Below, piece by piece: positions 10,123 through 10,257 of a DNA stretch of 64,000 nucleotides. The notes under the pieces were generated by a model. It saw nothing but the letters and a program-made list of their open reading frames with translations, did no database searches and had not been told where the DNA came from. This stretch comes from Podarcis melisellensis (taxonomy: Eukaryota): the NCBI GenBank assembly GCA_964234715.1, contig OZ174291.1; one strand, 5' to 3'. The position numbers were made by a program, and so were the translations under genes. How positions within the stretch are numbered: position 1 is the first letter of the stretch; each line of letters starts with the position of its first letter.

Positions 10123-10257
10123 TGCAGGCACACTATTATGCCACCAGAGGGCAGCAGATGGGTAGCGAGAGAGTGCAGCTACACAATTATGCCACCAGAG
10201 GGCAGCAATGGGGAGAAAGAGGCTGCAGGGACACAATTATGCCACCAGATGGCAGCA
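10123..10257 (+). promoter_or_regulatory. Three tandem CTCF-like motifs, each with an upstream TGCAG module (~50-bp period)
   Basis: Cores CCACCAGAGGGCAGCA (10141), CCACCAGAGGGCAGCA (10192) and CCACCAGATGGCAGCA (10242). Each is preceded by TGCAG with exactly 13 nt between it and the core. Confidence 0.75.

Follow-up and report, generated by a model that had tools for sequence, protein, structure and literature searches.

In CTCF sites, an upstream element of ~10 bp (about CTGCAGTTCC) is read by zinc fingers 9-11 and is followed by a linker (usually 5 bp, often 6 bp), a TGG-like triplet and the core (PMC12885311; PMC9004084; bioRxiv 10.64898/2026.01.05.696797). Spacings of 5 and 6 bp are both known (PMC9004084; bioRxiv 10.64898/2026.01.05.696797), and of the two the 6-bp spacing was measured to be the weaker (bioRxiv 10.64898/2026.01.05.696797). 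A probe from the IL3 +2.9 kb site, with the arrangement TGCAG-N12-core, has the commoner 5-bp linker (PMC12885311). Lamprey, chicken and human have the two-part binding mode in common (PMC5504073), so that its use in lizards may be inferred by bracketing. Tandem CTCF insulators are known with the IL3 +2.9 kb site in three copies and with 2-4 copies at Sox2 (PMC12885311, PMC11417384). CTCF motifs are also found inside tandem repeats, as in the human HRNR VNTR (PMC10234305) and the DXZ4/Dxz4 macrosatellite (PMC3491370), and CTCF sites have expanded in single lineages through SINEs such as rodent B2 (PMC10982698, PMC5504073).

Here we describe a short array of CTCF-type motifs in a 64-kb stretch of lizard DNA, which was analysed at its full length and is referred to as the window. 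Judged from sequence, our preferred reading, to which we assign a probability of roughly 0.6, is that a single two-part CTCF-type site was triplicated, specifically in lacertids and in the manner of a minisatellite, within intron 1 of an interferon-inducible GTPase (IRG/IIGP) gene. The features discussed below are collected in Table 1.

Table 1. Positions in the window of the array, the surrounding genes and other CTCF-like motifs
Feature	Position	Strand	Remarks
Intelectin exon	1592-1918	-	
IRG main coding exon (IIGP GTPase domain)	8101-9419	-	stop codon 8101-8103
IRG intron 1	9420-10693	-	GT 10693-10692, AG 9421-9420; holds the array
Repeat unit 1	10123-10173	+	51 bp: TGCAG 10123-10127, CTCF core 10141-10155, 17-bp purine-rich spacer
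Repeat unit 2	10174-10223	+	50 bp: TGCAG 10174-10178, CTCF core 10192-10206, 16-bp spacer
Repeat unit 3	10224-10273	+	50 bp: TGCAG 10224-10228, CTCF core 10242-10256, trailing spacer
A/T-rich tail and ~60-bp fragment of a very high-copy squamate SINE	10288-10362	-	adjoins the array, outside it
IRG exon 1 (at least)	10694-10876	-	start codon 10700-10698
Single CTCF-like site	12373-12391	+	PWM 19.0; between IRG promoter and F11R 3' end; array orientation
F11R C-terminal ...SSFLV stop	14602		
F11R Ig exons	~22.3 and 25.7 kb	-	
Best CTCF motif of the window	44652-44670	-	23.0 bits; 5' part of F11R region
CTCF-like motif	49951-49969	-	17.9 bits; convergent with the array

The repeat array and its CTCF-type sites

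The array consists of three 50/51-bp units arranged head-to-tail on the plus strand (10123-10273, 151 bp; units phased on TGCAG). Tandem Repeats Finder (TRF) reports it as one array (10118-10270, period 50, 3.0 copies, 80% matches, score 197). The structure agrees with the proposal of the first-pass annotation that the array was produced by duplication, and the pattern given there for its ~50-bp units, TGCAG-N13-CCACCAGA(G/T)GGCAGCA, fits all three units, with exact limits at 10123 and 10257. In every unit the 15-bp CTCF core consensus CCASYAGRKGGCRSY (IUPAC) is matched perfectly on the plus strand, starting at 10141, 10192 and 10242. The single further perfect match in the 64 kb is at 44653 (-), and the chance expectation from shuffles is 0.03 matches. 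The three matches in the array are duplicates of one ancestral site, and therefore represent one event and not three independent ones. The scores of the core PWM are approximate; by this matrix the three cores reach 20.8, 20.8 and 20.1 of a maximum of 26.8 bits and, with the motif at 44652-44670 (-), they are the four best matches in the window, followed by those at 12373-12391 (+; 19.0) and 49951-49969 (-; 17.9). The cores can thus be regarded as CTCF consensus, as had been suggested. They are free of CpG, so methylation should not block the array sites. A search for additional decayed units beside the array found none, the local alignments of the flanks to the units being at the level of shuffled controls.

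The TGCAG element is located 13 bp 5' of the core in all units, and the 6-bp register is kept in all species compared. Since the IL3 probe with its 5-bp linker has N12 at the equivalent place, the N13 of the array corresponds to the 6-bp-linker form. Positions 6-9 of the upstream module read GCAC, CTAC and GGAC in the units (xxAC), where T-N-C-C is expected. The first-pass annotation had described extended sites, with the module for zinc fingers 9-11 at about the expected spacing. The spacing is consistent with this, with TGCAG in the 6-bp-linker register, and the module is not matched at positions 6-9. Because the upstream match is limited to the first five bases, the extended site is half right.

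A comparison of the three paralogous units also qualifies the description that the sequence between them differs. It applies to the purine-rich stretch of 16-17 bp from each core to the next TGCAG, in which 9/16 columns vary, but not to the N13, which is invariant at 10 of 13 positions. Across the motif span 4/34 columns are variable, significantly fewer than the 9/16 in the spacer (Fisher p = 0.0016). Contact and non-contact positions within the span are kept equally well (variable at 3/24 and 1/10, respectively). Therefore, the contrast among the paralogs is one of footprint versus spacer, not of contact bases versus the rest. The single core change in the window (G/T, unit 2) is on the degenerate K position.

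The proximity of the SINE fragment raises the possibility that the array forms the front part of a mobile element, and contig depth over the bin that includes much of it (10058-10204) is ~3.5x single copy in three related species and not 1. However, the array depth is thousands of times below that of true repeats; the summed contig depth of the SINE fragment at 10297-10362 exceeds 5000x single copy. The fragment is outside the array, and the corresponding position in Zootoca lacks it. The repeat unit occurs at no second locus in the 64 kb, and both the position and the flanks of the array agree among six species. With the ~3.5x depth, the sole unit locus in the window and the orthologous flanks, a transposon-borne array was rejected, and we consider such an origin extremely improbable. 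The depth over 10058-10204 could be due to a small number of paralogs at other loci or to repeat contigs that were not resolved. The contig of one organism (organism E) breaks at 10105.

The IRG gene and neighbouring CTCF-like motifs

The DNA of the window is 92-96% identical to that of three Podarcis species, 90.7% to that of Lacerta agilis and 81-90% to that of Zootoca vivipara. An open reading frame at 8101-9501 (-) encodes an IIGP-family GTPase (Pfam IIGP, E = 4.6e-86). With exon 2 alone as the query, the closest relative of the IRG protein is the P. muralis 'interferon-inducible GTPase 5-like' protein (96% identity). The first-pass annotation had placed the array in the putative first intron of this gene, and an RNA-like contig and a RefSeq gene model confirm it. 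In the contig, which is record 8 of run X16 and comes from a relative, 10876..10693 is joined to 9418..8003; the RNA depth in run X16 is zero across 9470-10204. The RefSeq IRG protein of P. raffonei begins MGGRPRSSW, and its gene range contains the array. At the exon-1 donor in the window, ATGGGAG is followed by GTGAGA, and the ATG at 10700 is in frame with exon 2. The array is located 421-571 bp from this donor and is antisense to IRG.

The coding share of IRG exon 1 is ATGGGAG only, which gives the protein start MGG, a possible N-myristoylation start. Upstream of the IRG start, an ATG at 10741 opens a 13-codon uORF, and a CCAAT box and a TATA-like box are present at ~10890-10935, near exon 1. 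A 22-bp direct duplication (GCCAAYGAYAGGTGGAGCCASA) at 10071-10105, just 5' of the array, is complete in Podarcis species and 5 bp shorter in the window; it marks the region as repeat-prone. A G+C-rich (69%) tandem array of ~20 60-bp units at 62584-64000 contains long minus-strand ORFs.

The position of the array within the IRG transcription unit has consequences for the role that had been proposed for it, a strong tandem insulator at the boundary between an intelectin/IRG immune module and F11R. Seen from the array, the IRG promoter (beyond 10876) is in the direction of F11R. Being inside IRG and downstream of its promoter, the array cannot separate IRG from F11R, and a boundary in the proposed sense is not supported. 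The intergenic position is occupied by another site, at 12373, most relatives have at most two sites in the array, and constraint on the motifs across species is not seen (see below). In favour of the proposal, tandem copies in one orientation make insulation stronger in reporter and knock-in experiments (PMC12885311, PMC11417384), a strong convergent motif is present at 44652 (-), and IRG/intelectin and F11R are different kinds of gene. On balance, we regard a strong insulator between the two as unlikely.

The site at 12373-12391 is better placed than the array as a putative IRG/F11R boundary. It has one off-consensus base in the window species, and its surroundings are highly conserved. The orthologous sites are perfect consensus in Zootoca (L001:3360-3378), Lacerta (L002:3497-3515), P. 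muralis (L003:3923-3941) and P. lilfordi (L006:764-782), all on the minus strand of the respective loci. No orthologue was found in P. raffonei, where the segment compared is non-homologous.

Unit loss and conservation among lacertids

Orthologous loci were retrieved via the IRG protein from five other lacertids, Zootoca vivipara (L001), Lacerta agilis (L002), Podarcis muralis (L003), P. raffonei (L004) and P. lilfordi (L006), and loci from the non-lacertid squamates Hemicordylus, Elgaria, Sceloporus and Thamnophis (L005, L007-L009) were also compared. The array is present in all five lacertids, with its position, orientation and flanks as in the window. The units are 1:1 orthologous, and unit-specific bases are common to the species, so the triplication and the divergence of the spacers are older than the split of these genera. 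No CTCF motif of at least 12 bits was found in the 6 kb that precede the IRG coding exon in Hemicordylus, Elgaria, Sceloporus or Thamnophis; synteny of the Sceloporus locus was confirmed by an F11R-like neighbour. The absence of the motif from these four non-lacertid squamate families suggests that the cluster is a lacertid novelty. The Hemicordylus capensis protein P0009 (L005), which contains only an IIGP domain and is 64% identical to IRG, carries the source name 'intelectin-1 isoform X1', probably a naming slip from the neighbouring intelectin gene.

The number of good sites differs among the species. With a threshold of PWM at least 19 for a strong site, there are three in the window species and in Lacerta agilis, two each in Zootoca vivipara, P. 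muralis and P. lilfordi, and one in P. raffonei, which has in addition one weakened site (15.5 bits). Thus, of the five lacertids compared with the window species, four have lost sites. Unit 1, intact in the window and in Lacerta agilis, was lost elsewhere via three independent events. In Zootoca it was destroyed by a 9-bp deletion and substitutions. In P. muralis and P. lilfordi an exact 51-bp deletion removed a whole unit and left a unit-1/unit-2 hybrid. In P. raffonei two substitutions changed CCACCAG to CCGTCAG. The unit 2 core is present in all six lacertids with two changes, at the K position (G/T, window) and at the first C (to T, P. raffonei). The core, TGCAG and spacer of unit 3 are invariant in all six, which is not the case for units 1 and 2. 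TRF finds 2.2 copies in the Zootoca array, and contigs of two more congeners cross the array without a 50-bp indel. The array has the properties of a minisatellite (a unit of 10-100 bp, head-to-tail arrangement and change in copy number by whole units). The loss of copies by the usual minisatellite routes suggests that selection on them is weak or redundant. Insertions in IRG intron 1 beside the array were observed in P. muralis (L003:6413-6712) and P. lilfordi (L006:2901-3169), each of ~300 bp, and in Zootoca (L001:7379-8844, ~1.5 kb).

The disappearance of sites from four of five relatives, through deletion, removal of a whole unit or substitution, in a region whose 22-bp duplication shows it to be repeat-prone, is also consistent with a neutral intronic minisatellite, in which a 50-bp CTCF-like segment was triplicated by slippage or unequal exchange and is now decaying, either unbound or inconsequential. 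Conservation across species bears on this alternative. A dedicated alignment (A3) was used for the array, and a whole-intron MAFFT alignment, which misplaces the repeat units, served for the baseline outside the array only. Among the six lacertids, 2/30 columns are variable in the cores of units 2 and 3, 1/34 in the spacers of the same units, 0/15 in the TGCAG of all three units, 4/6 in the TGG-like triplets and 15/82 in the 5' flank, with an intron baseline of 147/909 (0.162 per column). In unit 3, all three positions of the TGG-like triplet vary. The conservation of the cores relative to the baseline is not significant (P = 0.12), and that of the spacers is nominally so (P = 0.019). There is no difference between cores and spacers (P = 0.60). 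The first-pass annotation had named, as one result that would refute its reading, a conservation across species that does not favour the motif over the spacers; the six lacertids gave this result. As a whole, the array region exceeds the intron baseline in conservation by a narrow margin, and other 50-bp bins of the intron reach the same level.

The lack of motif-specific conservation across species and an array barely above the intron baseline are what the neutral alternative would predict. It accounts less well for perfect, CpG-free consensus cores with PWM scores of at least 20 bits, for the invariance of unit 3 in six species, for the absence of any variable TGCAG column in all units and species, and for the contrast between motif span and spacer among the paralogs. 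Weighing both sides, we consider the neutral minisatellite quite possible, though not our first choice.

The purine-rich spacers, as the best-kept part of the array between species, suggest another alternative, in which conservation would concern not CTCF recognition but an intronic regulatory block of ~115 bp that starts with the unit 2 core, ends with the unit 3 spacer and is used by other factors, for example as an enhancer of the interferon-inducible gene. The hypervariable TGG-like triplets beside the cores would also fit with this. However, the nominal significance of the spacers is lost on correction over ~30 bins, no motif for a particular factor was identified, and the spacers of the paralogous units are strongly different from each other. 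A regulatory block of this kind is quite improbable.

Possible function and comparison with known systems

Our preferred reading of a lacertid triplication can be extended to a tentative mechanism. One two-part CTCF-type site in IRG intron 1 would have been tandemly triplicated in a lacertid ancestor. CTCF is predicted to bind unit 3 as a minimum; its zinc fingers 3-7 would contact the core, and TGCAG would be used in part by zinc fingers 9-11. The motifs point toward higher coordinates, so that CTCF on them would be directed toward the IRG promoter and F11R, and it may stall cohesin arriving from that side. The array could then function as a promoter-proximal anchor or a partial barrier, not as a boundary separating whole genes. 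Selection on it would be weak or redundant, allowing surplus copies to drift and decay. In these terms the array is a cluster of CTCF motifs duplicated in one lineage, plausibly bound by CTCF and probably under weak or redundant constraint. A literature search for CTCF occupancy (ChIP) data in lizards found none, and at present the array is a well-described, ordinary cluster of putative CTCF motifs.

A more specific role would be that of a transposon-independent CTCF anchor, dosage-tunable and redundant, that serves as the left partner of the motif at 44.65 kb and loops F11R with the IRG promoter. The motif at 44652-44670 (-) is convergent with the array at a distance of 34.5 kb. No TGCAG in register was found upstream of it, and its pairing with the array is speculation; we consider the looping anchor doubtful. 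If it were correct, the natural alleles with three, two and one sites would form a dosage series for insulation strength. The motif is ~100 bp from a 186-nt inverted-repeat pair (44008-44193 / 44363-44548, 90% complementary), of which a related copy is present at 5489-5652.

Should CTCF bind the array, close relatives with three, two and about one good site in orthologous arrays would provide a small natural experiment. Contacts and the expression of IRG and F11R across the species would then show the weight of site number in vivo.

The array can be compared with four kinds of known system. It resembles two-part CTCF sites (34/35-bp profiles cited as JASPAR MA1929.1, PMC10234305) in its perfect 15-bp core, in TGCAG at the distance of a 6-bp linker and in its 35-bp span. 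It is unlike them in module positions 6-9, and its 6-bp spacing is the weaker one (bioRxiv 10.64898/2026.01.05.696797). With the tandem insulators (IL3, Sox2 and alpha-globin sites) it shares the single orientation of the copies, a spacing of tens of bp and an element like the upstream module in each copy. Those insulators are tested constructs or known boundaries, whereas the array is a natural intronic repeat with a 50-bp period and has fewer copies in relatives.

In the HRNR VNTR and DXZ4/Dxz4, as in the array, a CTCF motif was multiplied by tandem duplication and the number of sites follows the copy number. The array is far smaller (3 units, 151 bp), is found in a lizard, and varies between species and not within a population. 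SINE-driven expansion is similar in that new CTCF motifs appeared in one lineage. It proceeds by transposition, whereas the array reflects local tandem duplication of a unit that is not high-copy. If bound by CTCF, the array would thus be an example of new CTCF sites arising from local duplication and not from the spread of SINEs.
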